From positions 1 to 64,000 of the IMG/VR virus record IMGVR_UViG_3300032322_002561: a DNA stretch of 64,000 bases; one strand, written 5' to 3'. The position numbers and the translations under genes were made by a program. The notes below the pieces were generated by a model, which had not been told where the DNA came from, did not search any database, and saw only the letters and a program-made list of their open reading frames with translations. Shown piece by piece: positions 42,234 through 59,667 of the stretch. Every line of letters starts with the position of its first letter. Position 1 is the stretch's first letter.

Positions 42234-43178
42234 ATGCCCGAGCAAAATTATCTTGAACTCAAGTTAGAAAATGATTTATTACTGGAAACCTCAGAGTTTG
42301 TGAAGTTTTGTGTGGCTCATCAACAACAACATATTGTGCTACGGGTCAACAACGAAGCTCACTGTTTAACTTATTGTGGCGTGTATGATATTCTTGATCA
42401 GTTTGATTTTGCTTCTGTAACCATAATAACTGCCAATGCCTTGGAACAGCATCCGCAATACAAAATTGAAAAAAAAGTATGGACGCACTGGCTTCAAAAT
42501 ATTAAAACATTTGATTTTAATTATGATTATGCCTGGAATGAACAGAAACTGTTTGGGTGTTTTTATGGTAGACCCAGTGCGCCAAGACTGGGTATTGCCA
42601 CACACTTGGCTCAGCATCATTCCAGCCGATCACTTATACGCACCAAATTTGATTTTGAACGAGAAGAATCTCGAAAACTTTTTGATTTGCAAAGACTGTT
42701 TGCCTGGCAACCAGAAATTATAAATCATTTACATTTGCTGAACAATCAACAATATATTGGTGATCAATACTATGATCGCGGTCACTACGATCAAGCCAAC
42801 ACTCTCAGTCACATGTATAAACATTTTTTGATTGACATTGTAGCGGAACCAGTTTGCGAAGGGCAAAGTTTTTACCCCACTGAAAAAGTTGTACGAGCCA
42901 TGTTGTGTAAGCGGCCATTTATTGTCATGGCATCACAAAATTATTTGGAATACTTGCGTCAAATGGGGTTTCATACATTTTTTGAATTTTGGAATGAAGA
43001 ATACGATGCTTATGATGCCAAGAATCGCTACATGAAAATACTAGATCTGATAGATCATTTGGCCAAAAAAACACATGCTGAAATGGTAGATCTTTATTAT
43101 GCAATGACCTTTCAGCTAGAGCATAATTATAAGTTGATTGTCAGTCAATCTTATACCACAAAAATTTTACCAATATAA
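42234..43178 (+). CDS. GT10-like (GT-B) glycosyltransferase-family protein
   Basis: IDIVAEP...YPTEKVVRAM...RPFIVM...LRQMGFHTF...EEYD. Confidence 0.6.
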   Translation: MPEQNYLELKLENDLLLETSEFVKFCVAHQQQHIVLRVNNEAHCLTYCGVYDILDQFDFASVTIITANALEQHPQYKIEKKVWTHWLQNIKTFDFNYDYAWNEQKLFGCFYGRPSAPRLGIATHLAQHHSSRSLIRTKFDFEREESRKLFDLQRLFAWQPEIINHLHLLNNQQYIGDQYYDRGHYDQANTLSHMYKHFLIDIVAEPVCEGQSFYPTEKVVRAMLCKRPFIVMASQNYLEYLRQMGFHTFFEFWNEEYDAYDAKNRYMKILDLIDHLAKKTHAEMVDLYYAMTFQLEHNYKLIVSQSYTTKILPI

Positions 43179-43179
43179 C

Positions 43180-44208
43180 ATGTCCAAACAAGTATTGATC
43201 ACAGGCGGTGCTGGTTTCATTGCACATCACATGATTGAGCATATCATACAGACCACGACCTGGAACGTGATTTGCCTGGATCGTCTTGATTTCAGCGGAA
43301 ATTTAAATCGTCTGCACGAGATATTAGCAAAATTTTTGCCGCAAGATCAAAGTCGAGTCAAGATTGTGTATCATGATCTCAAAGCTGAAATTAATTCTAT
43401 GATTGCGGCCGATATCGGGCAGGTAGACTATGTGTTGCATCTTGCGGCCAGTAGTCATGTTGATCGTAGCATATCAAGACCCATGGATTTTGTCATGGAC
43501 AACGTGGTTGGTACTGTGAATTTGTTGCAGTGGGCCAGAACACAAAACAATTTAGAAAAATTCATGTATTTCAGCACGGATGAAATTTTTGGTCCTGCAC
43601 CTGCTGGTGTGGCCTACAAAGAACGAGATAGGTACAACTCTACAAATCCTTATTCAGCCAGCAAGGCTGCTGGCGAGGAAATGTGTGTGGCTTTTGAAAA
43701 CACCTATGGCCTACCCATAGTGATCACACATACCATGAATGTGTTTGGTGAGCGGCAACATCCAGAAAAATTTATTCCACTGTGTGTGCGCAAGGTCCTG
43801 GCTGGTGAAACCATCAAGATTCACAGCAACAAGGACCGCACACAAGCTGGTAGCAGACACTACATTCATGCCAAGGATGTGGCTGCAGGTGCCATGTTTA
43901 TTTTAAATGTCAGCCCTGACAATGTAGTTAAAGATTACGGCGGAGCTCGGTGTCCCAAATTTAATTTGGTAGGTGCTGAAGAAATTGATAATCTTGCTCT
44001 GGCTCAATTGGTGGCGCAGTCTGTGGGGAAACCTTTGCATTATGAACTTGTGGATTTTCACAGCAGTCGCCCAGGGCATGATCTTAGATATGCACTCAAC
44101 GGTGATTTCATGGCTTCCCTGGGCTGGAAGCCAACAATCAAACTGTCGGATCGCATTCAGCAAGTGGTAGCATGGACCCTGCAAAATCCGCAATGGATAC
44201 AATCATGA
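43180..44208 (+). CDS. rmlB: dTDP-glucose 4,6-dehydratase
   Basis: ITGGAGFI, HLAASSHVDRS, STDE, YSASK, HPEKFIP, RPGHDLRY; start reassigned to ATG 43180. Confidence 0.92.
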   Translation: MSKQVLITGGAGFIAHHMIEHIIQTTTWNVICLDRLDFSGNLNRLHEILAKFLPQDQSRVKIVYHDLKAEINSMIAADIGQVDYVLHLAASSHVDRSISRPMDFVMDNVVGTVNLLQWARTQNNLEKFMYFSTDEIFGPAPAGVAYKERDRYNSTNPYSASKAAGEEMCVAFENTYGLPIVITHTMNVFGERQHPEKFIPLCVRKVLAGETIKIHSNKDRTQAGSRHYIHAKDVAAGAMFILNVSPDNVVKDYGGARCPKFNLVGAEEIDNLALAQLVAQSVGKPLHYELVDFHSSRPGHDLRYALNGDFMASLGWKPTIKLSDRIQQVVAWTLQNPQWIQS

Positions 44209-45056
44209 CCAAGCCTGTGTTACCTTTTGTGGAAATCATGGCCACACAGGCCTGCAATATCAGTTGTACAGGTTGTACAAATTACAGTGATCTCAATCAC
44301 AAAGGATGGTTGTCCTGGGAACAAGCTCGAGCACAAATTACGCCATGGCTACAACGAGTCGACATTCCTGATTTTGGTATTCTTGGTGGAGAACCTTTGT
44401 TGAATCCTGAAATACGCGACTGGATCCGTGGCATAAGAGAACTCATGCCCAAGGCACAGATAAGATTTACCACAAATGGGTTATTGTTAGACAAGAATCT
44501 TGATATCGTTGATTTAGCAGCAGAAGTGGGAAACATTGTTTTTAAAATTGGAGTACACACAGACAGTTTAGCCATTGAACAAACAATTGATTATATTTTA
44601 AATAGATTTGATTGGCAACCAGTGACCGAGTTTGGTATCAATCGGTTACTCACTAAAAACAAATTTAGATTTCAAATAAATCGGCCAACTACTTTTTGGA
44701 AAAGTTTTCGAGGTGACTATACAAACATGCAACCTCACAACAGTAATCCAGCCGAGGCTTTTTCAATTTGTTGCCAGAAGACTTGTCCATTACTATATCA
44801 AGGAAAAATATACAAATGCAGCACCAGTGGTTTACTGTTAGATGTGTTAGAAAAATTTGGGCACCAAGACAACACCGAGTGGCTTCCGTTTATTAGCCAA
44901 GGATTACAGCCAGATTGCACAGATCAACAATTACAAGAATTTTTGAATAATTTTGGACGTCCACACAAGATCTGTGGCCAATGTCCAACACAAAAAGATC
45001 TGGGCAGTAAAATAGTGCATCTACAAAACGTGCATACCAAAAAAATCAAATCATGA
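44205..45056 (+). CDS. Radical SAM protein with C-terminal Cys cluster
   Basis: CNISCTGC, LGGEPLL, TTNG, C..TC.LLYQGKIYKC...ICGQC. Confidence 0.88.
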   Translation: MTKPVLPFVEIMATQACNISCTGCTNYSDLNHKGWLSWEQARAQITPWLQRVDIPDFGILGGEPLLNPEIRDWIRGIRELMPKAQIRFTTNGLLLDKNLDIVDLAAEVGNIVFKIGVHTDSLAIEQTIDYILNRFDWQPVTEFGINRLLTKNKFRFQINRPTTFWKSFRGDYTNMQPHNSNPAEAFSICCQKTCPLLYQGKIYKCSTSGLLLDVLEKFGHQDNTEWLPFISQGLQPDCTDQQLQEFLNNFGRPHKICGQCPTQKDLGSKIVHLQNVHTKKIKS

Positions 45057-46102
45057 ACACGTGCTTGCCAATATCTGTACAAACACAAGATCGAAAAATT
45101 TATCGTAAAGATAGATTAGTTGCGGCCTTTTTTCAAGCACGAGAACAGAATAAAAATTTAGAAATAGATTTTTACCCTGAGGGTAGTTGTGCCACGTCAT
45201 TGCGATTGTATGAAATTTTGGATGAACTTTGTGAAAAATACAATTTTGATAAATCACGAATCACAATCAAAACTGCCAATCTTTTAGAACAACATGATCA
45301 CTACCGTATAGTTTGTGTTCCTAGTTACTGGTATGAGATTCGGGAAATCCAGGCCTGGGTGACCAAGAATTCCATAGATACTGGAATTATGCCCACGCGG
45401 CATTTTGGTTGCTTTGTGAGTAGAAGTACCTGGTCCAGACTATGGGTTTCCACGTATCTTAACAAACATCACGCAGATAAAACTTTGCAAACTTATCACT
45501 ATGATCGTACCAGACAAAACTACAATGGCAACGGCTATGTGGGTCTTGATGATCTTTTTCAGTTTGGTTGCAATATCATACCTGACTGTGCAAATTTTTT
45601 GACCACGTGTCCTAGAACCATTGATCTTGATTTTTTAAAAACGTATAAAAATGCAAAATCGTTATTTCAGCACGGCGACAGTTACTATCCAATTCAAGTA
45701 CCTGCCAACATGAATTTGCTGAACTACTATCATGACATATTTGTAGACATTGTTACAGAACCAAATGTCATGGGCACAAACTTTTTAGTCACTGAAAAAC
45801 TTTGGAGATGCATTGTGGCCAGGAGACCTTTTATTGTGCTTGGTACTGCAAACTATTTGCATAATTTGAGAAAGTTGGGATTTGACACTTTTTATCAGTA
45901 CTGGGACGAGAGTTATGATGGACAAATTGGACAAACCAGAATTGGTCATATGCTAGAAGTTATTGACAGGTTGGCGACTTGGGATACTGAACAATGCAGT
46001 CAGACACTCAACCGCATGCAACCCATACTTGATCATAATTTACAAGTTTTTAAATCGCTTGATTACAACAAACTTGCCAAGGTATTTGACATCAATGACT
46101 GA
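45053..46102 (+). CDS. GT10-like glycosyltransferase-family protein
   Basis: VDIVTEP...VTEKLWRCI...RPFIVLG...LRKLGFDTF...DESYD. Confidence 0.6.
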   Translation: MNTCLPISVQTQDRKIYRKDRLVAAFFQAREQNKNLEIDFYPEGSCATSLRLYEILDELCEKYNFDKSRITIKTANLLEQHDHYRIVCVPSYWYEIREIQAWVTKNSIDTGIMPTRHFGCFVSRSTWSRLWVSTYLNKHHADKTLQTYHYDRTRQNYNGNGYVGLDDLFQFGCNIIPDCANFLTTCPRTIDLDFLKTYKNAKSLFQHGDSYYPIQVPANMNLLNYYHDIFVDIVTEPNVMGTNFLVTEKLWRCIVARRPFIVLGTANYLHNLRKLGFDTFYQYWDESYDGQIGQTRIGHMLEVIDRLATWDTEQCSQTLNRMQPILDHNLQVFKSLDYNKLAKVFDIND

Positions 46103-47489
46103 TAAATCAGATTTTTACTCAGCCGCCGAACACATGCGTGATGTGCTAGGCAAAGGCATGTGCCTGGCCAAGTGGAAACAGGTAAGCCTGCACTTGCCTA
46201 CCGGACTCAATAATTCATGTTATCACCCACCTTTGCATGAAATACCAGCTGATTTGTTGACTTCCAATCCCAGTGCCTTGCACAACACTCCTTACAAAAA
46301 ACAGCAAAGACAGATCATGCTACGTCAAGAACGTCCGCAAGAATGCAGTTATTGTTGGGCCATGGAAGACAACGGCAAACTCAGTGACAGACATTATAGA
46401 AGTGGTGAGCCTTGGGCTGCCAAAGATTTTGATACGATCATAAATTCCACAGGAGATGAAGATGTTTTACCTAGTTATGTTGAAGTCAATTTTAATCATG
46501 CTTGTAATCTTAAATGTAGTTACTGTAGTCCACAATTCAGTTCAACCTGGCAGCAAGAAGTGGATCAGCTTGGCGCTTATCCTACTAGCACTCAACACAA
46601 TGATCCTGATTATTTTAGGGGTCGCCGTAAGCCTATTCCTGTTCGCGAACATAATCCATACGTAGAAGCCTTTTGGCAGTGGTGGCCTACTTTGTATCCA
46701 GAGTTAGAACATTTTAGAATGACTGGTGGTGAGCCGCTCATGGACCGGAATACCTATCGTGTGTTTGATTATGTGCTAGAGAATCCTAGCAAAAAATTGC
46801 ATCTAAATGTGACCAGTAATTTCACTGTGGAAGAAAATTTGTGGAAAAAATACAAAGACTATGTGCGAAGGCTGTGTGACACTGATGATGTCAAACTGGA
46901 ACACTTCATGCAGTATGTCAGTCTTGATGCCTGGGGCGCACAGGCCGAATACATCAGACACGGTCTAGATTTTGAATTGTTGTGGGATCGAGTCAATCAA
47001 TACCTGGAAGAAATACCTTATAGAAACAGTTTGACATTTATAGTGACCATGAACAATTTGAGTGTAACCACACTGGCAAATTTGTTTGCTGGCATCCTTG
47101 GGTTAAGACAAACCTACAGCAAAACCTATCAACGTGTATGGTTTGACACACCAGTATTGCGTCAACCAGAGTGGCAAAGTCTACAGATTCTACCTGAAAG
47201 TTATGCTGAAAAATTAGAACACTTGTGGGCCTGGATGATTCGACAAACAGAACGTCCTGAAGATCCATTTCACGGTTTCAAGGATTATGAAATTGCCCGG
47301 CTGGATCGAGACATAGCCTGGATGCGTAGTGGTCAGAACCTGGACCCTGCAGTATTACAGTCCAGAAAAGCTGACTTTTACAGATTTTTCAACGAACATG
47401 ATCGCAGGCGCGGCACTGACTTTTTGAAGACTTTTCCTGACATGGCCTCTTGGTGGAAGGAGTGCGAATATCATGCTAGGCAATCATAA
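46095..47489 (+). CDS. Radical SAM protein with N-terminal twitch/SPASM-like domain (subtype A)
   Basis: CLAKW...SCYHP...CSYCW; CNLKCSYC; TGGEP; start reassigned to ATG 46095. Confidence 0.9.
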   Translation: MTDKSDFYSAAEHMRDVLGKGMCLAKWKQVSLHLPTGLNNSCYHPPLHEIPADLLTSNPSALHNTPYKKQQRQIMLRQERPQECSYCWAMEDNGKLSDRHYRSGEPWAAKDFDTIINSTGDEDVLPSYVEVNFNHACNLKCSYCSPQFSSTWQQEVDQLGAYPTSTQHNDPDYFRGRRKPIPVREHNPYVEAFWQWWPTLYPELEHFRMTGGEPLMDRNTYRVFDYVLENPSKKLHLNVTSNFTVEENLWKKYKDYVRRLCDTDDVKLEHFMQYVSLDAWGAQAEYIRHGLDFELLWDRVNQYLEEIPYRNSLTFIVTMNNLSVTTLANLFAGILGLRQTYSKTYQRVWFDTPVLRQPEWQSLQILPESYAEKLEHLWAWMIRQTERPEDPFHGFKDYEIARLDRDIAWMRSGQNLDPAVLQSRKADFYRFFNEHDRRRGTDFLKTFPDMASWWKECEYHARQS

Positions 47490-48585
47490 AGTGGTTGTTG
47501 ACGAGTGGGCTGAAGTCTGGGACCTACTACGGCCTTATGCAGATGCAAGTTTTTGGCGTTGGGAAGACGTACCGCTTGATCCAGATACCATATATGTTGT
47601 GGGACGAGTGGTACTCAAACAAAATTGGATCAGTATTACTGAGTGGGCAAAGCGTCATCCTGGTAAGATAATTTTTAGTAATCCAGCCGAAGGTAGTCAA
47701 ACCATACTGTTACAGTTACAACGCATGCGCATTGTTGATTTGGTAAAAAATGGTTCGATAGGTTTGTTGACTTCAGGAGATCTTGAACCAGGCTGGAAAT
47801 ATTGTCAAACCGACTGTTACTTTTCCAATATTGTAGAATATTTAGAAAACATAGATGCCCACACATATTCAAGTCAGGTTAGAGAAAAAATTCAAAAACC
47901 TTATAATTTTTTGATGCTGAATGGTCGACTACGGCCACATCGTAAGGCCTTGATCGACGCACTGCGTGAAAAAAATTTATTGGATCGGGCCCTATGGACC
48001 AATCTTGGCAGCAGAGTTGAAATGGAGTTTACCAGTCAACTGCAAACCAACAAATTAGAATCCATAAGATTGTTGCCGCCCGAATACGAAATTGAGCGTG
48101 CAAGGCCCAATCTAACTGCCAGCATGTACACTGACGGTGGATTTGTCAAACACCAATTATTCAATAATACCTGGGGCGATGCCATTGTAAATCCACAGGC
48201 CTATATTGACACCTATTTTAGTCTAGTTACGGAAACCATATTTGATTATCCTTACACTTTTAGAACAGAAAAAATTTGGAAACCCATGATCATGCAACAC
48301 CCCTTTGTGGTGGCGGCCAACACAGGTTATTATCGAGATTTGCGAAAAGCTGGGTTCCGTACTTTTGATCATTTAATTGATGAAAGTTTTGATCAAATTG
48401 ACAACAGTGCCGACAGAATTTCGCGTATAATACAAGTTGTTGATGCAATAATTTCTAATGGTGCAGATGAATTCTTAAAAGCCAGTGAAGATGTATGTAA
48501 ATATAACTATCTGCACCTGCGCGAACACAATCAACGTGAGCGTGATCAATTGCCTATGAAATTAACCCAGTATATCAATGAATGA
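47473..48585 (+). CDS. GT10-like glycosyltransferase-family protein
   Basis: LNGRLRPHR; FSLVTET...RTEKIWKPM...HPFVV...LRKAGFRTF...IDESFD. Confidence 0.6.
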   Translation: MLGNHKVVVDEWAEVWDLLRPYADASFWRWEDVPLDPDTIYVVGRVVLKQNWISITEWAKRHPGKIIFSNPAEGSQTILLQLQRMRIVDLVKNGSIGLLTSGDLEPGWKYCQTDCYFSNIVEYLENIDAHTYSSQVREKIQKPYNFLMLNGRLRPHRKALIDALREKNLLDRALWTNLGSRVEMEFTSQLQTNKLESIRLLPPEYEIERARPNLTASMYTDGGFVKHQLFNNTWGDAIVNPQAYIDTYFSLVTETIFDYPYTFRTEKIWKPMIMQHPFVVAANTGYYRDLRKAGFRTFDHLIDESFDQIDNSADRISRIIQVVDAIISNGADEFLKASEDVCKYNYLHLREHNQRERDQLPMKLTQYINE

Positions 48586-49918
48586 TTTAGAATTTCGTCG
48601 TCAAGTATTGGACACTAAAAGTGCCAGCTTTTGTGCGGCCAAATGGTACAATGCCACCATATGGTTGGGCTCAGGTCAGACCACTAGTTGCCATCATCCA
48701 CCAGCACACACTATTGGAGAAGAGTTTCGAATCAACCCGCGGGCAATTCATAACACTGCTCAAAAAAAAGAAGATCGTCGCATGATGTTGGCTGGTGAAA
48801 GACCACCTGGATGCGAGTACTGCTGGAAGATCGAAGACATGGGCGTGGATGCTGTGAGTGATCGTGTGTACAAAAGCAAAATTTATCCTATCGAGGCCCT
48901 GGATCAAGCATTTGGCACACCGGTCGAAGCCGACGTGAATCTTCGCACGCTGGAAATTGCTTTCGATCGCACTTGTCAATTTGCCTGCTCGTACTGTAAT
49001 CCAGCGTTCAGTAGCACCTGGGTCAAGGACATCAAGAACAACGGAGCCTATGAAAATTTAATCAGCGACGGGCGCAATCATTTTACACACGAACACGACA
49101 GTGCTCAACTCTATCGCTTTGGCGAAACCAATCCCTATGTTGAAGCCTTTTTTGCCTGGTGGGAAACAGACCTGCATCGTACTTTGCAAGAATTAAGAAT
49201 CACTGGCGGTGAACCAACCATGAGTGGCGAGCTATGGAAGTTGATTGATTGGTTCAAAGACAATCAAGGCAAGAGCCAAACACGCTTGGCCATCAACTCA
49301 AATCTGGGCATGGATCGTCTCCGGTTGTTGGACTTTATCAAACGTGTGGAAGGTATTCCGCACCTGGAAATTTACACCAGCATGGAAGCCACTGATGCTC
49401 AAGCCGAATACATCAGAGATGGTCTGGATTACGATCTATGGATGCACAATGTACAAGAATTGTTGGAACACGATGACATACGTGCTGTGCATTGTATGTG
49501 TACTATCAACGCCCTGTGCCTGGACAGCCTACCAGATCTGCTGGATCAATTGATGCGACTCAAACAGGTTTATACCCGTGAGCGTGTGAACTTTACATTG
49601 AACATATTGAGATTCCCCAGCTTCCAGAGTGCCCTGGTCCTGCCAGATGCCATACGTACACAGTACAGACACAATCTTGAAACCTGGTTGAAACTCAATC
49701 AAGCCAATCCCTTGTTGCACGAGCATGAAATCAATCACATGCAGAGATTGATCGACTATCTTGATGTGGTCAAGACCCCGCACAGTGACACATTTGAAAT
49801 GCCAAAACTGCACAACGATTTTAAAAAATTCTATCAACAATATGATCAACGACGCAACAAAAACTTTGTTGATACTTTTCCTAACCTAGCCGATTGGTTC
49901 AATGACATACCAGTATAA
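48578..49918 (+). CDS. Radical SAM protein with N-terminal twitch/SPASM-like domain (subtype A)
   Basis: CAAKW...SCHHP...CEYCW; CQFACSYC; TGGEP. Confidence 0.9.
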   Translation: MNDLEFRRQVLDTKSASFCAAKWYNATIWLGSGQTTSCHHPPAHTIGEEFRINPRAIHNTAQKKEDRRMMLAGERPPGCEYCWKIEDMGVDAVSDRVYKSKIYPIEALDQAFGTPVEADVNLRTLEIAFDRTCQFACSYCNPAFSSTWVKDIKNNGAYENLISDGRNHFTHEHDSAQLYRFGETNPYVEAFFAWWETDLHRTLQELRITGGEPTMSGELWKLIDWFKDNQGKSQTRLAINSNLGMDRLRLLDFIKRVEGIPHLEIYTSMEATDAQAEYIRDGLDYDLWMHNVQELLEHDDIRAVHCMCTINALCLDSLPDLLDQLMRLKQVYTRERVNFTLNILRFPSFQSALVLPDAIRTQYRHNLETWLKLNQANPLLHEHEINHMQRLIDYLDVVKTPHSDTFEMPKLHNDFKKFYQQYDQRRNKNFVDTFPNLADWFNDIPV

Positions 49919-51161
49919 CAGTGCAGACCTAGTCAAGCCGGTAGAGCTGACTGAACGTGAAGAATTTTTACTAAAAGATAGTAAAACATTCTGCATCTAT
50001 CCTTGGATACACTTGCATGCCTATCCCACAGGTGAAGCCTATCCTTGTTGCCATGCTGAAATGAAACCCGGGGTTGTAGGAAACTGTCGCGAAAAAACCC
50101 TGGCAGAGATATGGGTTGACGAACCCATGCAACGACTACGCAAAGACATGCTGACAGAAACACCCAACCCGGCATGCACAAGATGTTATGAACAAGAACA
50201 AGCCGGATTCTTCAGTGGCAGAAAAAGTGCCAACAAGCATCACGGACACCATATCAAGAAGTTGGAATCAAATCCATTTGAGATGACCTACTGGGACATA
50301 CGATTCAGTAACTTGTGCAATCTCAGTTGTCGTAGTTGCGGGCATATTTTCAGTAGTAGTTGGTACCAAGATCAAGCTGTGCTGGCTGGCCCTGAATGGA
50401 AGAGCAACAATAAGCCTTTGAACTATGCTGGACGTACCGAAACCGACATCTGGGAACAATTGATTCCGCATCTTGATCATGTGGAACAGATTTACTTTGC
50501 CGGTGGCGAACCGCTCATGATGGAAGAGCATTACAACATTCTTGAGGAACTAGAACGCCGTGGCAGGTTTGATGTGCGTTTGATTTACAACACCAACTTC
50601 ACACACGTCAAGCTCAAAGATCGCTGGGTGTTTGATTATTGGAAAAAGTTTAAATCAGTGGCAGTGGGTGCCAGCTTGGATGCCATGGGTCTGCGTGCCG
50701 AATACATTAGGAAAGGCACAGTATGGAAGACGGTTGAAAACAATCGACGCCAGATGCTGTTGGAATGTCCACATGTGGACTTTTATATCAGCCCCACCCT
50801 CAGTATATTAAATGCCTGGCACCTGCCCGATTTCCATCGTGACTGGAGCGAAAAAGGTCTGATCAGACCACAGGATCTCAACGTGAACATACTGCAAGAC
50901 CCGGCCTACTATCGCATAGATATCGCACCTACGGAATACAAACAGAAGTTGCGTAAAAAGTTTGAAGAACATCTGGCATGGTTACAATCACAAGACATGT
51001 TGAATCGTGCCAGCGTGGGATTTGAAAGTGCCATAAACTTCTTGATGAACACTGACAACACTGCACTGATACCCAAGTTTTGGGACAAGACCAATCAACT
51101 TGATAGCATACGCAATGAAAATCTATTGCGAGTCATTCCTGAACTTGAGGCTCTTAAATGA
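49902..51161 (+). CDS. Radical SAM protein with N-terminal twitch/SPASM-like domain (subtype B)
   Basis: CIYPW...PCC...CTRC; CNLSCRSC; AGGEP; YNTN. Confidence 0.9.
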   Translation: MTYQYNSADLVKPVELTEREEFLLKDSKTFCIYPWIHLHAYPTGEAYPCCHAEMKPGVVGNCREKTLAEIWVDEPMQRLRKDMLTETPNPACTRCYEQEQAGFFSGRKSANKHHGHHIKKLESNPFEMTYWDIRFSNLCNLSCRSCGHIFSSSWYQDQAVLAGPEWKSNNKPLNYAGRTETDIWEQLIPHLDHVEQIYFAGGEPLMMEEHYNILEELERRGRFDVRLIYNTNFTHVKLKDRWVFDYWKKFKSVAVGASLDAMGLRAEYIRKGTVWKTVENNRRQMLLECPHVDFYISPTLSILNAWHLPDFHRDWSEKGLIRPQDLNVNILQDPAYYRIDIAPTEYKQKLRKKFEEHLAWLQSQDMLNRASVGFESAINFLMNTDNTALIPKFWDKTNQLDSIRNENLLRVIPELEALK

Positions 51162-52378
51162 ACTTGCCACACGATCAATTTTGTGTATTACCTTGGATCA
51201 GCTTAGAAGCCAGTCCCATTGGCACTGTGAGACCTTGTTGTTTAGCTGACGACGAAATTGTAGATGAACAAGGCGAAAAATTCAATTTGTCTTCAGCCAA
51301 CTTTGGAAGCATACAATCTAGTCGTCACATGACACAGCTCAGACAAGATTTCTTGTCGGGTAAAAAACCACAAACTTGTAGAAAGTGTTGGAACGAAGAA
51401 CGTGCTGGTCGTACCAGCAAACGCATGCACACTCTTGACAGACTCAAACATATTTTGCCCGATCAGGAGTGGACGCAGGATGCCAAACCCTTGATGTTCT
51501 TGGATCTCAAATTGGGCAATATCTGTAATTTGAAATGTAGAATTTGTGGCTCCTGGAGCTCCAGTCAATTTGCCACAGAAGAATTGGCTGACATGCCTTT
51601 GGAAACCGACAAAAAAACTACCTTTCCCTATCAAATGTTGCGTGCGGGATCATGGCCCAGAGACAACAAACAATTTTGGCAACAAATTGACCAGCACCTA
51701 CACGATATTAGGTACATTGAATTCACTGGTGGTGAACCATTCATGATTCAAGAACACTTTGACATGTTGCAAGGCATAGTAGATCGCGGCATTGCGCATC
51801 AAGTGGAAATACACTACAACACCAATGGCACTCAATGGCCCGAACAGGCCGAACAAATATGGCAACATTTTCGCACAGTGGAAATTGCATTCAGCATCGA
51901 TGACATTGGTGAAAGATTTGAATATCAACGTAGCAACGCTGTCTGGACTGAAGTATGTGCGAATCTTGAAAAATTCAACAAGTTAAAACAGCGACATTCA
52001 AATATTGTGCTACAAATTTGTACCACAGTGAATGTTTTCAACATACGGTATCTTGATCAAGTGGCTGCTTGGATTGACTCTCATAAAGAAAATTTTAACT
52101 TTGTGTACTGGAATATCATGCATGATGCCTGGTATTTCAGTATTTCTACCTTGCCAGACACAGTGAAAAAATCCTTGACAGAATACTTGACGTCTGTTGC
52201 GATACCAGAACAGTACAAATCAGAAATTCAAGGCATAATTGAATTTATGAATCGTGGTGCTTCCACAGATGGATTCATGTTAAAATTAAAAATAAAAGAT
52301 CTAGATCGCAAGCGCGGTCAAAATCTTGCTCTAGTAGAGCCAGAGTTTGCTCAATTGATTGACTATGCCGGCCCCTAA
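51158..52378 (+). CDS. Radical SAM protein with N-terminal twitch/SPASM-like domain (subtype B)
   Basis: CVLPW...PCC...CRKC; CNLKCRIC; TGGEP; YNTN. Confidence 0.9.
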   Translation: MNLPHDQFCVLPWISLEASPIGTVRPCCLADDEIVDEQGEKFNLSSANFGSIQSSRHMTQLRQDFLSGKKPQTCRKCWNEERAGRTSKRMHTLDRLKHILPDQEWTQDAKPLMFLDLKLGNICNLKCRICGSWSSSQFATEELADMPLETDKKTTFPYQMLRAGSWPRDNKQFWQQIDQHLHDIRYIEFTGGEPFMIQEHFDMLQGIVDRGIAHQVEIHYNTNGTQWPEQAEQIWQHFRTVEIAFSIDDIGERFEYQRSNAVWTEVCANLEKFNKLKQRHSNIVLQICTTVNVFNIRYLDQVAAWIDSHKENFNFVYWNIMHDAWYFSISTLPDTVKKSLTEYLTSVAIPEQYKSEIQGIIEFMNRGASTDGFMLKLKIKDLDRKRGQNLALVEPEFAQLIDYAGP

Positions 52379-53672
52379 GCAAAGACCTGAAACCCTGTGC
52401 ATGGCTCCGTGGACGCATACCTATCTTAGTCCACAGACCGAACGGCGCATGTGTTGTGCCAGCCGAGAACCTGCGCAAAACTTTGAGCAGTACATAGACA
52501 CGTCCTCAGGCACAGGCGAATATAGTCCCGTGGCTCTTGATGAACACTGGAATAGTGAACACATGAGAAGTGTGCGACTGCGTATGATGCGTGGGGAAAC
52601 CCTGCCCGAATGTGAAGTATGCAACAACAAGTTATTGAACACTGATGTATATCGAGACTATTTCAATAGACTGTTCGAGCACAAGTATGAGGAATGCATG
52701 CGTGCTACGGATCGCTATGGATTTACCAAGGTGCGCCCTGTGAGCTGGGATTATAGATTCAGTAACCTATGTAATTTTAAATGCAGAATGTGTGGAGACA
52801 TGTTGAGCTCTAGCTGGGAAACTGAACAGCGTCAACATGACATGATTGACTGGTCAGATAAAAAAAATACCTGGATGCGTCCTGAGGTTCGTGAACGTAT
52901 TTCACTCTATCAAGACACGCAAATTGAACATGAATTTGCACTGGCTGTGGAACAACATCGAGTAGAAGAAGTGTATTGGGTCGGTGGTGAGCCACTCATG
53001 TATGAACAGCACTGGCGTTATATGCGTCGTATCATCGAACTAGGCGATGGTCCTCGAGTGTATGCCAGATACAACACAAATCTCAGCAGGATAGACTACA
53101 AAGGAACAAATCTTTACACAGACATTTTGGCACACATACGTGATTGGCAGATATGTGCCAGTCTGGATGGGACTGGAGCCACCGGTGAATACATTAGAAC
53201 AGGCTTAAACTCTGAATCCTGGTTGGCAAATTTTGTGCAAGGTCGTCGGCTGGCCTCTCATCGCAGGCAAATGCGTATAGACTTTACTTTGACTTTGCCA
53301 GGACTTTTCCAAGTCGAGAACATAAACAGTCTTGCACAAAGTCTAGATGTAGATGTTCTAGCCAAGGTTGTTTTCAGTTTTACACCAGACATTATCATGA
53401 GTCCTTTGGCCTTGCCTAGACAGTTATTAGACGATACAGTAGACCGTTTGGCGGATCGTATACCAGCCGGTGCCTTGAAGGATGTGTTGTTACAGCTCAA
53501 ACAGCGACCTACATTTGCGGAACAATGGCCCACTGAGTGGCAGGCTGGACTTGCAAAAGGCAAGCGTCGTGTGTTAAAATTAGAACAAATACGTGGTGAT
53601 ACCTATACCATGGCAGATATACTCAGACCCAATCAGGAAATATATGACTGGTACCAAGCAATCGCTACTTGA
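52365..53672 (+). CDS. Radical SAM protein with N-terminal twitch/SPASM-like domain (subtype B)
   Basis: CMAPW...MCC...CEVC; CNFKCRMC; VGGEP; YNTN. Confidence 0.9.
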   Translation: MPAPKQRPETLCMAPWTHTYLSPQTERRMCCASREPAQNFEQYIDTSSGTGEYSPVALDEHWNSEHMRSVRLRMMRGETLPECEVCNNKLLNTDVYRDYFNRLFEHKYEECMRATDRYGFTKVRPVSWDYRFSNLCNFKCRMCGDMLSSSWETEQRQHDMIDWSDKKNTWMRPEVRERISLYQDTQIEHEFALAVEQHRVEEVYWVGGEPLMYEQHWRYMRRIIELGDGPRVYARYNTNLSRIDYKGTNLYTDILAHIRDWQICASLDGTGATGEYIRTGLNSESWLANFVQGRRLASHRRQMRIDFTLTLPGLFQVENINSLAQSLDVDVLAKVVFSFTPDIIMSPLALPRQLLDDTVDRLADRIPAGALKDVLLQLKQRPTFAEQWPTEWQAGLAKGKRRVLKLEQIRGDTYTMADILRPNQEIYDWYQAIAT

Positions 53673-54699
53673 TGTTGTAGAAATAGATCTAGGTACCGCA
53701 GAAGATCGTTTGCGTGTGTATGCCAACATCTATGACAACAGTCTCAGTCGCAAATGGCTAGCGGCCTTGAATGATTTGCTGATCAATCAATACCACCTGG
53801 AAAAGAACTACTGTTTTTTTGGATTTGCCGATGGTCCCAGGAACGGACCTTATCTGTTAGAACAAATCAATAACAGTATACAAGCTATTAACAAGTCCGG
53901 TATAGGCTATCACATTGACGATTATTTTGATATGGCCAACAGTGTGGATGAGTCAGACGATGTTGATCACAATCATTTCAATCAACTACACAGATACTTT
54001 GAAGACTTGCAAGGCGGCAGTGGCCACATCAGTGATTACTACTGGCAAGCTGACAACGCCACACGTTGGCATATTAGACAACTGAACTTGTTGTGCCATG
54101 AATTTGAAAGTTGGCAACTGAGCTGGCGGAAAAAACACACGGCACCGATGTGGCAACGACCCAGCCAACTCATGTGCTGGCTGAGTGCGCCACGTTTTGT
54201 TTTAGATGAAGCGGATTACGAACTGTTTGGCATAGAAACAATAAATCGTAGCCTGGGCGGAGTATATGTAGGCGTCAACAAAGCAGTTGGCAAACATCAC
54301 TGGGAAGTGTTTCAGGATGAAGGCCGCGACAGCAGGATAGGCGAGCTGACTACTACCAGCCTTAAAGCTCAAACTGAAGCCGCTGGAGACTTTGACATAG
54401 AGTGGGCCAACAATCCAGGCACATTTCCTTGGCAGATAAAACAACTAAAAGAGTTTCGCGAATGGCTAACGGTCAATGGCTTTGATCCCGAAGATCGTAG
54501 CTTGACCATTGGACATCCGCAGGTGGGACAAGTGGATTTAATCCGCAGTTTTGGCTCGGAAGATTATCAAGAGATTTGGGCGCAGTTAAATACTCATTTA
54601 AATGTGCATGCTATTCGCACCAGCACTGCACGTGCCACTTATGAATATTTGTGGTCTGACCCAGACTACATGCAACAACAACTGAGGAACATGAAATGA
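53644..54699 (+). CDS. Hypothetical protein (His/Glu-rich, LHRYFE and LCHEFE motifs)
   Basis: About 351-aa ORF coupled on both sides; start uncertain. Confidence 0.7.
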   Translation: MTGTKQSLLDVVEIDLGTAEDRLRVYANIYDNSLSRKWLAALNDLLINQYHLEKNYCFFGFADGPRNGPYLLEQINNSIQAINKSGIGYHIDDYFDMANSVDESDDVDHNHFNQLHRYFEDLQGGSGHISDYYWQADNATRWHIRQLNLLCHEFESWQLSWRKKHTAPMWQRPSQLMCWLSAPRFVLDEADYELFGIETINRSLGGVYVGVNKAVGKHHWEVFQDEGRDSRIGELTTTSLKAQTEAAGDFDIEWANNPGTFPWQIKQLKEFREWLTVNGFDPEDRSLTIGHPQVGQVDLIRSFGSEDYQEIWAQLNTHLNVHAIRTSTARATYEYLWSDPDYMQQQLRNMK

Positions 54700-54797: not shown

Positions 54798-54952
54798 TCA
54801 CTCCTTGTGTAAACATCTGTATCATGACCAATGGCGTGTGCGAAGGGTGTGGTCGCACCATTGATGAAATTGCAGAGTGGACCTTGTATACCGATCAAGA
54901 GCGGCTGACAATCATGCAAAGACTAGGACATGAGCAACATACTGGGAATTAG
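54794..54952 (+). CDS. DUF1289-like small Fe-S protein (not in ORF track)
   Basis: MITPCVNICIMTNGVCEGCGRTIDEIAEW...ER: the PC...C...C.GC.RT.DEI..W pattern. Confidence 0.85.
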   Translation: MITPCVNICIMTNGVCEGCGRTIDEIAEWTLYTDQERLTIMQRLGHEQHTGN

Positions 54953-56384
54953 TGCTGGATTTCATGATGCTGCTGTTACAGTAATTGATCGCCATGGCGA
55001 CATACTGTTTGCTGCACACAGTGAGCGTTTTAGCAAGAAAAAAAATGATGCCAATCTGCATCCTAATCTCATGATGGACGCTATGCATTACGGTGATATC
55101 AATCACATTGCGTACTATGAACGTCCCTGGCTAAAACAATTACGTAGACTACGAAGTGGCGAAGGCATACAGTGGGATCAACTCACTGTCAAACAAATAT
55201 TAACAAAACAACTGGGGTCAGCTGTGTGGCCTCAAATAAGCACTCACAATCATCACCTGTGCCATGCGGCTGCAGGTTTTCAAACCAGCCCATATGATCG
55301 TGCCACATGTGTGGTCATAGATGCCATTGGCGAATTTGACACAGTTTCAATCTGGGGAGCAGAATATGATAGTAAAAATCAAGCAAAGTATAAGAAACTT
55401 TGGAGCCAGAGTTACCCGAGGAGCATCGGGCTCTTTTATAGTGCAATTACTCAGCGAGTTGGCCTACACCCGCTAGATGAGGAATACATCACCATGGGCA
55501 TGTCCGCTTGGGGTCAGCCACGATATGTAGCGGAATGTCGCGCCCTGTTGGCGGATAACCTGCACATAGGCATAGACCCCAACTGGTTGCCTGACGCAGT
55601 CAATGAAGACATAGCTGCATCAGCACAGATTTTAACAGAAGAATTGATATATACGATTATACGTCGTGCTAAGGATTTTGATTGGAGCACCAATCTGGTG
55701 TACCAAGGCGGCGTGGCTTTGAACTGTCTTGCTAATAGAAAACTCGGTGAATATTTTGAAAACATTTGGATCATGCCTGCTCCTGGCGATAGTGGCAATA
55801 GTCTTGGCGCTGCCGCATTGGCCCACGGAAAACGTTTACGCTGGAGGCATGCGTTTCTTGGCCACGAAATCCCAGGAGAATATCCTGTTGGCGCCGTCGT
55901 TGATCATCTACTATCAAATCAGATCGCTGGAGTTGCTAGTGGACGAGCCGAGTTTGGACCTCGAGCCCTGGGAAACCGAAGCCTCCTCGCCGACCCCCGA
56001 GGAATACATATAAAGGATCAAGTCAATGCGATCAAACGCCGCCAAAAGTTTAGACCATTTGCGCCAGTTATCCTCTCAGAGCATGTGGATGAATTTTTTG
56101 ATATGCCCCGGGGTTGGAGTAGCAGTCCTTATATGCAGTCAATCGCAACTTGTCGCCGTCCTGACTTATTTCCTGCTATCTGTCATGTGGACAACACTAG
56201 CCGAGTACAGACTGTTGCGGCTGACGGCTCAGGCATTAGACGTCTCTTAGAGGCCTGGTATGCACGCACAGGCTGTCCCATGTTGCTGAACACCAGCTTG
56301 AACATACGCGGTGAACCCATGGTCAATGATCGTCGAGATGCAGATAGATTCGAACAACTATACGGTGTGAAAGTTTTTAGTTAA
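54930..56384 (+). CDS. O-carbamoyltransferase (NodU/CmcH/TobZ family)
   Basis: GFHDAA, ERFS, HHLCHAA, DAIGE, GGVALNC, EFGPRALGNRS, FRPFAP, RVQTV, LLNTSLN. Confidence 0.95.
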   Translation: MSNILGISAGFHDAAVTVIDRHGDILFAAHSERFSKKKNDANLHPNLMMDAMHYGDINHIAYYERPWLKQLRRLRSGEGIQWDQLTVKQILTKQLGSAVWPQISTHNHHLCHAAAGFQTSPYDRATCVVIDAIGEFDTVSIWGAEYDSKNQAKYKKLWSQSYPRSIGLFYSAITQRVGLHPLDEEYITMGMSAWGQPRYVAECRALLADNLHIGIDPNWLPDAVNEDIAASAQILTEELIYTIIRRAKDFDWSTNLVYQGGVALNCLANRKLGEYFENIWIMPAPGDSGNSLGAAALAHGKRLRWRHAFLGHEIPGEYPVGAVVDHLLSNQIAGVASGRAEFGPRALGNRSLLADPRGIHIKDQVNAIKRRQKFRPFAPVILSEHVDEFFDMPRGWSSSPYMQSIATCRRPDLFPAICHVDNTSRVQTVAADGSGIRRLLEAWYARTGCPMLLNTSLNIRGEPMVNDRRDADRFEQLYGVKVFS

Positions 56385-57406
56385 AGATAAGTTTCAAGAC
56401 CGCCACGTCTGCGTAAATCCTGAGTGCAACAACTTATGCCACCATCCCAAAAATAACTGTGACGCAGTTCTGAAATAATAGGGTTGATTCGGTGACGTTT
56501 GCAGTAATCAAATACTTCGCGATTGTAGGCACTGAATATCACATTTTCTTCATCTAGCACAAGACAGTTGACATCAAACACCGTTTCAGCCACAAAGCCA
56601 GTCCACTTGTTCAAATAGGTGTCTACAAATTGAGTGAACTCAGGTGTGGGAGTTTGTCCTTGCACATACCAGGCCCCAGGATTTGATTCGTATTTGAACT
56701 TGCCTACCTCCATGGCGGCCCAAATTGAACTATCCCAGATTTTACATATATCCCAGCCAGGAAAATCTCTGGCAAGATCAAGATTAACATCGTGCTTGCT
56801 GCTCAACAACACGCCTGGCTTGAGAATAGCAAACACGGCATCGCCGTGACCATCTGTGACAGCTTCGTGTATTCTATACTCTGGCCCCAGCACATTGTCC
56901 ACAATCCAGCGTGTTTGTTCTGGCTTCAAGAAATCACTGTTGTCAAAAAACACATCACGGCCCACACGCACAATACACGAAGCCGACGCACCATTCAAGA
57001 TACAATCTGGATCCCAAGCACTGCGATGTGGGTTAACCACCGATTCTGAAAACTTGGTGCAGACCTTGTCCAGTTCTGGCACTGCCAACACACGCAACAA
57101 ACGATCACCTAGAGTAATTTGCCAATCTCTGGGAGTCAAGGGCGGTAGTGGAGCTCCCCCGCCTTCGGTTTGAAACCACACAAATTCATCTTTGTTAGGC
57201 AGTTCAGGTCTGTGAACCAGGGCACCATACTGTTCAATTGTACGTTGCAGATTGTCAAGATCTTCCTGGGTTTCAGCCAGGATCTGTTGTAGTTGACAGC
57301 GTACCTGAGCATTGTCAATGAAATCAAAGTAATCGGGCGTGTAAGCACGACCCACAATGACTTCTTCAAGTGGTTGCCACGAGGTGTATGAATTAACTTT
57401 GGCCAT
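56381..57406 (-). CDS. Amidinotransferase-family (pentein) protein
   Basis: VNSYTSWQPLEEVIVGR, PRD, RVGRD, GHGDA, C-terminal GGISCCTQD. Confidence 0.85.
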   Translation of the reverse strand: MAKVNSYTSWQPLEEVIVGRAYTPDYFDFIDNAQVRCQLQQILAETQEDLDNLQRTIEQYGALVHRPELPNKDEFVWFQTEGGGAPLPPLTPRDWQITLGDRLLRVLAVPELDKVCTKFSESVVNPHRSAWDPDCILNGASASCIVRVGRDVFFDNSDFLKPEQTRWIVDNVLGPEYRIHEAVTDGHGDAVFAILKPGVLLSSKHDVNLDLARDFPGWDICKIWDSSIWAAMEVGKFKYESNPGAWYVQGQTPTPEFTQFVDTYLNKWTGFVAETVFDVNCLVLDEENVIFSAYNREVFDYCKRHRINPIISELRHSYFWDGGISCCTQDLRRRGGLETYL

Positions 57407-58589
57407 GGATTTTTTGATGCAAGTTATTTAAACGATCTAATTTTGATGTTGCAAATAGTCGTTGATTGTGATCAAGATCCGCCTGGCACTGTTTGTATAG
57501 ACTATCTAGACCCTGACTATGCGCCTGTTTGATAGCTTCGCACAATTTGATCCATCTATGAGTGTGATTGGGTTCTAGATCATATGTGTTATCTAACACA
57601 TCGTCAAACACTCGATATCCTAGATCACGCAATTGTTGTAGACTGCCAGCACCGCCAGCAACAAAAAACAACTGACCATGTTTGATGGGTTTAAATGTTT
57701 TTTCCGTGATAAAAGCACCGCCGCTTTGATCTACATCAAATTGACTTTCTAACACAATGTTGCAATAGCTGTCAACATGGTATTTGAATACGGTAATTCC
57801 ATGATCATTGCGTTGATCCTGCGTGAGATCGTCGCTGAAGTAGGGTGTTTGTGATACAAACTTCTCCAGTGACCAACGCAATTGTGAAATACTGTCAATC
57901 TCCAGCGGGTTGTCGCAGGTGCTGTCTTGATCAGTGGGTTTTTCGCAGTAACTCCAGTAACTGTTTTCCAACAAATTGTTTTTTTTCAAATCAGCCATGA
58001 TTGTGGCTCGCCACCATTTGTGCAGTCTAGACAGCACTGTGAAATCTTTCGAACGTGGTCGTGTGTGTATGGGCAAAGGTGCTTCACGGTTACGAGCATG
58101 ATACCAAAGTTCAAAATCTACAAAATACACAAAATTTTCTAGATTCTCGGCTGCGCTGTTGCTGCTCACAAACACATAACAATTTTTAGGTAGTGCATGT
58201 TGTTGCACCAAGCTGTCAAGTCTTGATTTTATGCGTTGCGGGTTGTCGCCCTCATGATACAAAAATAACACACGCAGTTGATGTTGTTTGAGTCGGTTGC
58301 GCACAGCAGACCCCATGAGTTCAAAATAGTCAATTTCAAAATCAAAAAATCCTATACCAATGGGATAAAAAGTATTTTCTGGCAGTGATGATTGCAGTTC
58401 ATGAATATTGATTTTGGCTCCATGTACTTGACAATATTCTTCCAGGCGCAAGGGAATGGTGTAGGGCCAGTGTTGTCCAAATTCTCTCCAGCTTTGAGTA
58501 TACGGCCGGCCCTGATGTCGAGCTAGAGCTGGATATATTTTGCCCTTGATGGTTCTGTCTGCTACAAAATTAAATTCTAAATTCATCAA
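57393..58589 (-). CDS. GT10-like glycosyltransferase-family protein
   Basis: CNIVLES...FITEKTFKPI...LFFV...LRDLGYRVF...DNTYD. Confidence 0.6.
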   Translation of the reverse strand: MMNLEFNFVADRTIKGKIYPALARHQGRPYTQSWREFGQHWPYTIPLRLEEYCQVHGAKINIHELQSSLPENTFYPIGIGFFDFEIDYFELMGSAVRNRLKQHQLRVLFLYHEGDNPQRIKSRLDSLVQQHALPKNCYVFVSSNSAAENLENFVYFVDFELWYHARNREAPLPIHTRPRSKDFTVLSRLHKWWRATIMADLKKNNLLENSYWSYCEKPTDQDSTCDNPLEIDSISQLRWSLEKFVSQTPYFSDDLTQDQRNDHGITVFKYHVDSYCNIVLESQFDVDQSGGAFITEKTFKPIKHGQLFFVAGGAGSLQQLRDLGYRVFDDVLDNTYDLEPNHTHRWIKLCEAIKQAHSQGLDSLYKQCQADLDHNQRLFATSKLDRLNNLHQKIHGQS

Positions 58590-59667
58590 ACATTCCTAAA
58601 AGTTCGGTCCAAAGCCGTTGACTAAATCCACCGTTGTAAAAATGATCAAAGTTATGCTCTACCACGGGCAAGCATCTGCGGTGTATTTCTTGACGCTCTT
58701 GCTGGCTCAAATTGTCAAGGTCTTTAAGTAATTTTACAATCTTTTCCATGCGCAGTCTATCATCGATTTCTTCATCATAGCTTTCATCAAATATGTCACC
58801 AAAGGTTTGGAATCCATATTCACGCATGTATGCCAAACTGCCTGCTGGTGCTACCAACACAAAAGGCATTTCTAGAGCAATGGCCTTGAAAGTTTTTTCT
58901 GTGATATGCAAACGGCGTCCAAAATATACAGTTTCTGTGGCCACGTATATCAAACTGTCAGCAGACTCTTCAAAATTGGTAAGCCAACAGCTGGCCATGT
59001 GTTGTGTGTCCTCGCCGCTGAACAATCTTGGCAATGTGGCTGCGGCAAACACTTGCTCAATGTCGGGATATATGTTATTATACTTAGAAGCAACTTGTGC
59101 TATATCAATGTTTTCGTACACACATGTTCTTGGAGCACTGATATGATTGTGCGCTAGATCATGTTTGAACACGTTATAAAGAAACAATACTCTATGATCA
59201 CGCTTGCCACCTACTATGCGATTGGGACTGATAAAAGTACGACTGGGTCGACGATTGCGAGCTCGAGCGATCAGAAAGGTTTTATCGTATCCACGGAACC
59301 AGTCCTGACTGGCCCAGCCGTGGAAAAAGTAGTAATGTGGAGTCCAGCCATACTGTTTGCACATAGCATCCACAAATTCTCCGCGTTCACTGACCACAAT
59401 GTGTCCAGGTGGTGTGTTTGGATATAAAATATCTCGATTACGTCTTTTTACATCTTGAAACAGGGGTTCGTGTAGATCCAGCCACACTGGTTCTTGATCA
59501 TGCATGTAAACATAGTCGGTTTCTATGATGTCATCCCTACCAAGATTAAATAAATGATCCTTGTCAGTGTGCCCAAACGGGTCACAAAAAAACAATCTTG
59601 TGCCTGGTCTGTGTTGTGCAAACCAAGGCCAAAATGTATGGTTGTAAATTTCATCAATTCTAATCAT
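58570..59667 (-). CDS. GT10-like glycosyltransferase-family protein
   Basis: KRDHR; IYVATET...HITEKTFKAI...MPFVLV...MREYGFQTF...DESYD. Confidence 0.6.
   Translation of the reverse strand: MIRIDEIYNHTFWPWFAQHRPGTRLFFCDPFGHTDKDHLFNLGRDDIIETDYVYMHDQEPVWLDLHEPLFQDVKRRNRDILYPNTPPGHIVVSERGEFVDAMCKQYGWTPHYYFFHGWASQDWFRGYDKTFLIARARNRRPSRTFISPNRIVGGKRDHRVLFLYNVFKHDLAHNHISAPRTCVYENIDIAQVASKYNNIYPDIEQVFAAATLPRLFSGEDTQHMASCWLTNFEESADSLIYVATETVYFGRRLHITEKTFKAIALEMPFVLVAPAGSLAYMREYGFQTFGDIFDESYDEEIDDRLRMEKIVKLLKDLDNLSQQERQEIHRRCLPVVEHNFDHFYNGGFSQRLWTELLGMFDEFRI
59546..59552 (+). promoter_or_regulatory. Possible internal late promoter TTAAATA for the 998-aa gene
   Basis: 113 nt upstream of ATG 59666, inside the antisense gene. 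Confidence 0.3.

Follow-up and report, generated by a model that had tools for sequence, protein, structure and literature searches.

A jumbo-phage sugar island combines a conserved GT-A and radical SAM gene set with mobile genes for predicted GT-B glycosyltransferases

Why would a phage interleave a series of glycosyltransferase genes with a series of radical S-adenosylmethionine (SAM) enzymes, and what might the combination make? The question is raised by a 64,000-nucleotide stretch of viral DNA (the window, in what follows), bases 1–64000 of the linear IMG/VR record IMGVR_UViG_3300032322_002561, which is 236,309 bases long and estimated to be ~68% complete. A sugar island of ~23 kb, running from 41.3 to at least 64.6 kb, lies directly 3′ of the baseplate and giant-fibre genes and on the same strand, and within it glycosyltransferase genes that share a TEK motif, called TEK genes here, alternate with radical SAM genes. 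The order given for 42234–49918 by a first-pass annotation, namely glycosyltransferase, RmlB-like short-chain dehydrogenase/reductase (SDR), radical SAM, glycosyltransferase, radical SAM, glycosyltransferase, radical SAM, is correct, and had been read as a series of paired steps in which a sugar is added and then modified. Comparison with homologous loci gives another answer: the conserved functional unit is a GT-A glycosyltransferase (P8like), five radical SAM enzymes with an N-terminal twitch domain (R1–R5) and a conserved protein that ends the cassette (P4like), and the TEK glycosyltransferases are frequent mobile accessories.

One TEK protein, TEK2, has 469 relatives in IMG/VR, and we compared 69 distinct TEK-anchored loci. 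The adjacency of glycosyltransferases and radical SAMs is far from random across these homologous loci, as 62 of the 69 contain radical SAM genes; 107 of 158 TEK genes adjoin one, and in 40 loci a TEK gene lies between two. When a cassette is called complete if it runs from P8like to P4like, 19 are found in this set, which was chosen through the TEK gene, and 15 of them have exactly five N-twitch radical SAMs. The number of TEK genes in the same 19 varies from 1 to 4, with a Spearman correlation of −0.53 to the radical SAM count. By best-match assignment R1–R5 are five separate orthologous lineages (41–78% identity) that always stand in the order R1 to R5; P8like is mostly 61–75% identical between loci, and the TEK proteins, at 28–65%, occur at varying positions. 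Paired steps are not supported by these numbers: TEK genes range from 0 to 4 per cassette beside radical SAMs fixed at five ordered, old lineages, and we reject a 1:1 pairing of the two on this variable count next to a fixed R1–R5.

Because the TEK-anchored loci had been picked via TEK, the comparison was repeated from P8like, relatives of which are found in at least 571 IMG/VR stretches. Among 59 distinct P8like-anchored loci with at least 8 kb downstream, N-twitch radical SAMs are present in 58 and TEK genes in 45, and TEK is absent from 6 of the 16 complete cores. On these counts we place the conserved unit in the GT-A gene, R1–R5 and P4like. The gene invariably tied to the radical SAM set is P8like, which lies just outside the coordinates covered by the first-pass annotation, and P4like stands at the cassette end in both the 19 and the 16 complete loci.

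A query of genome contigs with a single radical SAM gave matches only in two phage-like contigs (NZ_JBBAKG010000003.1 and NZ_JBBAKG010000001.1) of a Haliscomenobacter metagenome-assembled genome, which carry the same island including the carbamoyltransferase, the amidinotransferase and a TEK-TEK tail. Either these are phage contigs binned with the bacterium, or they hint at a Bacteroidota host. The assembly, assigned to Haliscomenobacter sp., is 6.9 Mb in size, its island contigs measure 148 and 183 kb, and it holds 19 TEK matches in total.

Table 1. Positions of the sugar-island genes and of other features of the window (aa, amino acids; ORF, open reading frame; HMM, hidden Markov model; NDP, nucleoside diphosphate)
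Feature	Position	Strand	Evidence
Lone C-terminal (donor-binding) half of a TEK glycosyltransferase, SEK replacing TEK	5883..6413	-	hhalign against family profile
ORF upstream of the half-gene, TAATG overlap with it; possible diverged N-terminal half	6413..6955	-	
Baseplate hub	13524-15023		
Baseplate wedge subunit	16609-20304		phrog_10646, E 2e-275
5065-aa ORF, immediately 3′ of the wedge gene	20304-35501	+	
P8like, candidate GT-A-fold glycosyltransferase, first gene of the cassette	41286..42224	+	invariant LIDGDN (DxD)
TEK1, predicted GT-B glycosyltransferase paralogue, 314 aa, GC 0.362	42234..43178	+	family HMM, translation
RmlB-like SDR, NDP-hexose 4,6-dehydratase-like	43138..44208	+	Pfam GDP_Man_Dehyd and Epimerase at 1e-49
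Small radical SAM, 294 aa, MoaA/viperin-like core, no twitch domain	44172..45056	+	Pfam Radical_SAM 9.5e-13; weak MoaA, HpnH and viperin matches
TEK2, predicted GT-B glycosyltransferase paralogue, 349 aa; modelled copy	45053..46102	+	AlphaFold2 pLDDT 90.3
R1, N-terminal-twitch radical SAM	45963..47489	+	NF033640 321.5 bits, match from 46152
TEK3, predicted GT-B glycosyltransferase paralogue, 370 aa	47473..48585	+	family HMM; orthologue between R1 and R2 in many loci
R2, N-terminal-twitch radical SAM	48578..49918	+	NF033640 305 bits
R3, N-terminal-twitch radical SAM	49902..51161	+	NF033640 392.7 bits; Pfam SPASM residues 31-96, Radical_SAM 134-264
R4, N-terminal-twitch radical SAM	51158..52378	+	NF033640 333.9 bits
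R5, N-terminal-twitch radical SAM	52359..53672	+	NF033640 279.6 bits
P4like, conserved protein ending the core cassette	53593..54699	+	22 invariant residues
O-carbamoyltransferase (NodU/CmcH type)	54930..56384	+	Pfam Carbam_trans_C 1.6e-47, Carbam_trans_N 3.4e-36
P5like, amidinotransferase	56381..57406	-	profile against PDB: AGAT 7.7e-25, StrB1 8e-18, SxtG 4e-18
TEK4, predicted GT-B glycosyltransferase paralogue, 398 aa	57393..58589	-	family HMM, translation
TEK5, predicted GT-B glycosyltransferase paralogue, 365 aa	58570..59667	-	family HMM, translation
998-aa protein, C-terminal ~200 residues paralogous to P8like (GT-A)	59666..62662	+	BLASTP, P0008 against residues 760-962: 27% identity, E 2e-12
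DegT/PseC-type sugar aminotransferase	62634..63737	-	Pfam DegT_DnrJ_EryC1 6e-55; NCBIfam PseC 2e-34
Second SDR epimerase/reductase, continuing past the window end (record 63664-64650)	63664..64000	-	Pfam Epimerase 1.6e-41, RmlD_sub_bind 1.6e-22

All five full-length TEK paralogues that had been reported are present as ORFs, and their translations all carry the motif VxE...TEK...PF...G..F...D, the sharing of which is far above chance. An HMM built from the five picks up the half-gene near the start of the window at E 1e-27 and, among 856 ORFs, four more copies beyond the window (record positions 92361–93491, 94123–95088, 126806–127900 and 220013–221257; E 4e-16 to 3e-32), so that the whole record holds ~10. 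Three residues (E248, K249 and G276) never vary across the 52 diverse members compared, and a further six (R129, E236, L272, F280, D289 and N329) hardly do (P0002 numbering). The strong divergence described for the N-terminal halves is borne out by a pairwise identity of 17%, against 26% in the C-terminal halves. A recount gives the same 19 G or C bases among the 60 at 42481–42540, and the TEK genes are indeed AT-richer, their GC content being 0.362–0.438 against a genome ORF mean of 0.448 (standard deviation 0.038); the seven lowest-GC ORFs of 175 include TEK1, TEK2 and ORF 6413–6955. This composition, together with the varying number and position of the TEK genes, agrees with the modular turnover that the first-pass annotation had suggested. 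A second small module, outside the window at record positions 124286–127900, consists of a radical SAM whose SPASM domain is C-terminal, a weak match to a methyltransferase, an ORF with only a sub-threshold DUF6492 match, and then TEK6.

The split copy reported at 5883–6955 stands in part. Its downstream ORF is a clear C-terminal half of a TEK protein (hhalign probability 99.8%, E 3e-30), but the ORF at 6413–6955 has no significant similarity to any N-terminal half; BLAST gave no relatives for it, and a non-significant hhalign match of 22 columns falls on the conserved Arg block. On either side of the half-gene are an SbcC-like gene (SMC_N/AAA_23; 4087–5850) and an SbcD-like gene (Metallophos; 6957–7970), both on the minus strand, and ~4.4 kb from it lies a further radical SAM-like ORF (372–1472, minus strand) with a weak match to the NF033640 region (E 2e-8).

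What kind of enzymes are the TEK proteins? Scans with Pfam, PHROGs and NCBIfam found no family model for them, TEK5 alone having an S6PP match at chance level, and sequence-profile searches of the PDB returned nothing significant. The AlphaFold2 model of TEK2 (53 sequences) has a mean predicted local distance difference test (pLDDT) score of 90.3 and consists of two α/β domains. Nearly all of its 50 best PDB representatives are GT-B enzymes, most of the matches spanning residues 1 to ~345, and GT10 fucosyltransferases belong to the group that ties for the best structural match; Foldseek likewise gave GT-B matches, which are weak. By its fold, then, the model is that of a two-domain GT-B glycosyltransferase, as had been expected of this family, and the TEK proteins are predicted to be soluble GT-B glycosyltransferases. 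No 19-residue hydrophobic segment is present in the TEK and other island proteins that were checked, and we reject a membrane-bound pathway on this lack of a membrane-spanning segment.

The GT10 fucosyltransferases, to which the TEK motif had been likened, deserve a closer comparison, and here the likeness holds for the alignment of the donor blocks, at modest significance, but not for the family model. Pfam PF00852 matches none of the 53 TEK members at E≤10, nor does it match the six-frame translation of the entire 236-kb record at that threshold, and on this we reject membership of GT10 as now defined. When TEK was compared profile against profile with nine bacterial PF00852 proteins, hhalign placed the TEK-family V.E..TEK..PF..G on the GT10 FEN..YxTEK..IPIYWG over 42 columns (E 7.5e-4, probability 25%), and greedy extension of this alignment brought the R129 block onto the invariant GT10 Arg block, co-linear with the first. 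The same two blocks are matched by Arabidopsis FUT11, the sole glycosyltransferase in the PDB profile search, at a sub-threshold E of 0.8, and ESM features lead to PF00852 clusters with a score of 0.79, which is taken as a lead only. The TEK blocks that resemble the GT10 donor site are F..S/G R....R and V.E....TEK...PF..G.

The TEK proteins have several properties in common with CAZy GT10 (PF00852; H. pylori FucT, 5zoi; FUT9, 8d0o; Arabidopsis FUT11, 9s6a): the predicted GT-B fold, a similar size (TEK ~310–400 aa), and, by alignments of modest significance, co-linear donor blocks made of an Arg after a β-strand followed by an acidic residue, TEK, a hydrophobic strand and a Gly. Among the top-ranked structural matches GT10 also has the best sequence identity to TEK, at 10–14%. 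However, the TEK motif has E-P/T where GT10 has E-N, and its spacer is longer; the N-terminal domain shows no sequence relationship to that of GT10, and the TEK proteins, which lack a membrane anchor, belong to the phage cytoplasmic proteins. Judged by these alignments, the C-terminal donor-binding domain is probably GT10-like and distantly related, with the family lying outside GT10 as now defined. The sole dehydratase in the window is RmlB-like, no search aimed at GDP-fucose synthesis genes having been made.

The family extends far beyond this record. The 153 homologues that a word search with TEK2 found all lack a Pfam domain and are called nothing more specific than 'hypothetical protein'. 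A search of a viral structure library gave 22 significant matches: a single fusion to a UDP-glucose dehydrogenase, and 21 proteins that are uncharacterised and come nearly all from phages not in culture. The ESM Atlas contains a cluster of 705-aa fusions of a TEK domain to an SDR dehydratase, and in the present record a UDP-glucose dehydrogenase gene adjoins TEK7; these fusions and this neighbour gene link the TEK domain with the metabolism of nucleotide sugars. When 1.84 billion representatives were searched with the family profile, 15,130 TEK clusters, defined at 50% identity, came up at E≤1e-3, and 6,865 came up at the stricter E≤1e-30; many of these metagenomic members are tandem double-domain proteins of 700–1000 aa. 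A scan of 185,579 prokaryote genomes for the TEK2-type pattern found no relative.

R1–R5 all score well above the curated cut-off of 170 bits for NF033640 (N_Twi_rSAM), at 279.6–392.7 bits. With that family they share a CxxxCxxC core (C139, C143 and C146) and an N-terminal auxiliary-cluster domain with four cysteines (C31, C49, C92 and C95), all seven being invariant among the five. The auxiliary Fe-S (SPASM/twitch) domain thereby precedes the radical SAM core, whereas it usually follows it. Unlike NF033640 at large, a family without an assigned reaction, the enzymes here form five distinct lineages, occur as an ordered set in phages and are tied to a GT-A gene. With NF033640 itself set aside, the R1–R5 cores score best with MoaA and viperin, which act on nucleotides. 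A sixth NF033640 copy is found at record positions 198717–199811, and the small radical SAM of the island, which has no twitch domain, directly adjoins TEK2-type glycosyltransferases in many loci. The TTG start listed for R1, which makes it overlap TEK2, is probably too early.

Cellular members of the family are rare in the genomes sampled: NF033640 was found in none of 14 control genomes and in 3 of 301 Bacteroidota genomes. Tandem copies occur in two of these three, and in one further genome with sub-threshold matches. The neighbours of the Bacteroidota genes include PhyH dioxygenases, methyltransferases, a GT2-methyltransferase fusion, a weakly GT11-like gene, a carbamoyltransferase and GDSL-type (SGNH) proteins, and such surroundings are polysaccharide-tailoring neighbourhoods.

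The remaining island genes add a set of sugar-tailoring functions. P8like has a single Rossmann-like nucleotide-binding domain with a DxD motif, as looked for in a GT-A enzyme, and its fold resembles PBCV-1 A64R and other GT-A enzymes. For P4like, at the other end of the core, searches of Pfam, PHROGs, NCBIfam, PDB sequences and the ESM Atlas brought up no relative. The RmlB-like SDR matches the dTDP-glucose 4,6-dehydratase model TIGR01181 at 2e-72 and 244 bits, under its 365-bit cut-off, and its true start is probably ~50 nt inside the ORF. In the amidinotransferase P5like, C326 is invariant within a GGxxC(C/L)T block that aligns with the Cys block of AGAT. The N-terminal 750 residues of the 998-aa protein contain a recurring PTVEY, near residues 138, 401 and 464. 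Past the window, record positions 64901–78755 encode ThyX, an FkbM methyltransferase, a DUF2201 metallopeptidase/VWA protein, a 666-aa radical SAM, a MoxR-like AAA ATPase, a PstS-like phosphate-binding protein, a methyltransferase and a GT4 glycosyltransferase.

The source phage is a jumbo myovirus, the wedge protein of which is ~40% identical to those of phages GAP32, CBB, fHe-Yen9 and PA5oct. The island and wedge gene have no nucleotide-level relative by megablast among 50,697 deposited phage genomes, and TEK2 has no match in the same genomes by tblastn; the phage belongs to a jumbo lineage without a close cultured relative among those records. The product of the 5065-aa ORF that follows the wedge gene is a candidate giant fibre and a possible glycan acceptor. 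Its 5113-aa orthologue in a related contig has a faint FG-GAP match only.

From these folds, family assignments, conservation and synteny we infer a product and an acceptor. The reading that we prefer, with slightly better than even confidence, is that the island assembles a heavily tailored glycan of the 6-deoxy/amino-sugar type on virion proteins of the fibre or baseplate, with the TEK glycosyltransferases as its variable part. The dehydratase, the aminotransferase and the SDRs would make donors of the NDP-4-amino-6-deoxyhexose type, P8like would prime one fixed acceptor, and R1–R5 would each perform a different radical step, five in all, with the sugar or NDP-sugar as substrate. Carbamoyl-, amidino- and methyltransferases would decorate the product, and the TEK enzymes would extend the glycan in a lineage-specific manner, adding different sugars by way of their divergent N-terminal acceptor domains; attachment to the virion proteins would take place in the cytoplasm. 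A virion acceptor is favoured because the island is contiguous and co-oriented with the baseplate/fibre genes in all relatives, because its enzymes are soluble, and because there are precedents for virus-encoded virion glycosylation.

Several points weigh against this virion-glycan reading. The placement of the island beside structural genes is circumstantial evidence of an acceptor, the loci come from related phages so that the synteny is partly inherited and not independently selected, the cores that lack TEK point to a core pathway with no strict need of it, and the N-twitch radical SAMs could act on a peptide or protein instead of a sugar. Taken further, this last point would make the radical SAM set and P4like a system for modifying proteins or peptides, either akin to the maturation of ribosomally synthesised and post-translationally modified peptides or acting on a structural protein, with the glycosyltransferases as passengers in a hypervariable region. 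Most characterised SPASM/twitch enzymes do act on peptides, some cassettes contain small unannotated ORFs, and the same TEK-less cores would fit. We nevertheless find it very improbable, given that a GT-A enzyme always starts the core, that TEK genes are inserted between particular radical SAM genes at recurrent positions, that sugar-nucleotide enzymes are embedded in the island, and that the radical SAM cores resemble MoaA and viperin most, their own family aside. A transfer of sugars to phage DNA in the style of the T4 α- and β-glucosyltransferases and of phage DNA-glycan systems described more recently, with the tailoring enzymes making unusual donors, seems quite improbable as well. Identity of the T4 enzymes, which are GT-B, to TEK is 6–9% with a root mean square deviation of ~6 Å, they lack the TEK and Arg blocks, and a hydroxymethyl-pyrimidine gene (ThyA-like, PF00303) was not found in the 236 kb, where ThyX is present, although in a record that is ~68% complete this absence is unproven.

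Two further alternatives keep the sugar chemistry and change its destination. The island might serve to remodel the surface of the infected host, through its O-antigen, its capsule or some other envelope glycan, as a block to superinfection or an aid to release, as has been put forward for the glycosyltransferase-rich 'host recognition clusters' of aquatic T4-like phages. A precedent of like content exists in the hypervariable region beside the tail fibres of pelagimyophages and cyanomyophages, with glycosyltransferases, lipopolysaccharide-type sugar genes and radical SAM cassettes, for which modification of the host O-chain has been proposed (PMC7029224). The polysaccharide-like clusters around cellular N_Twi_rSAM genes would be in keeping with this, and glycosyltransferases working on lipid-linked intermediates can be soluble; however, the island showed neither a membrane protein of any kind nor a polyprenyl-phosphate transferase, flippase or polymerase, the cassette adjoins the late structural genes and shares their orientation, and a strictly conserved core of GT-A and five radical SAMs argues for one fixed, phage-defined acceptor and against a diversity of host glycans, which together leave a host-surface role unlikely. 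The other alternative is a free small molecule, such as an aminoglycoside-like pseudo-oligosaccharide or a nucleoside-sugar, directed against competitors or host defences. The content does recall an aminoglycoside pathway, with a StrB1-related amidinotransferase, a carbamoyltransferase, a DegT aminotransferase, an NDP-hexose dehydratase, glycosyltransferases and twitch radical SAMs, and a cyanophage with a similar trio has been annotated as carrying 'antibiotic synthesis genes' (PMC12801897). Yet enzymes of these types are also used to decorate glycans linked to proteins or lipids, we recognised no gene for a cyclitol synthase, an exporter or resistance, and a free metabolite would leave the position among virion genes unexplained, so we judge it improbable.

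Glycosylation of virion proteins, the reading that we prefer, has parallels in known systems. Those of the mycobacteriophages (capsid and tail-tube), of PBCV-1 (A064R) and of Mimivirus (fibril glycans) likewise use soluble virus-encoded glycosyltransferases, with a 4,6-dehydratase and an aminotransferase, beside structural genes. None of them has a radical SAM set, however, and mycobacteriophages have far fewer paralogous glycosyltransferases than the ~10 found here. The host recognition cluster of pelagimyophages and cyanomyophages (PMC7029224) is also variable, lies beside tail-fibre genes and combines glycosyltransferases, sugar genes and radical SAM cassettes, but it was described by gene category, and the TEK family, the R1–R5 order and the P8like/P4like core are not defined there.

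A wider proposal, more tentative and in our view plausible without being probable, is that the island represents a widespread, undescribed phage pathway in which a glycoconjugate tailored by radical chemistry is built, for instance on the giant fibre, by a GT-A enzyme, five N-twitch radical SAMs acting in a fixed series, and P4like, and is diversified between lineages by fast-evolving GT10-like glycosyltransferases. If a pathway of GT-A and five radical SAMs is indeed at work, it would give N_Twi_rSAM its first assigned role and add a new chemistry of virion or infection-stage glycosylation. With more than 15,000 unnamed TEK clusters, the GT-B assignment with a GT10-like donor site offers an annotation handle for thousands of phage genes, and the core, present in at least 571 IMG/VR stretches, defines a testable pathway for a radical SAM family without a known reaction. 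Should virions turn out to carry the product, differences in the glycan would become a candidate factor in which hosts aquatic jumbo phages infect or how they evade defences.

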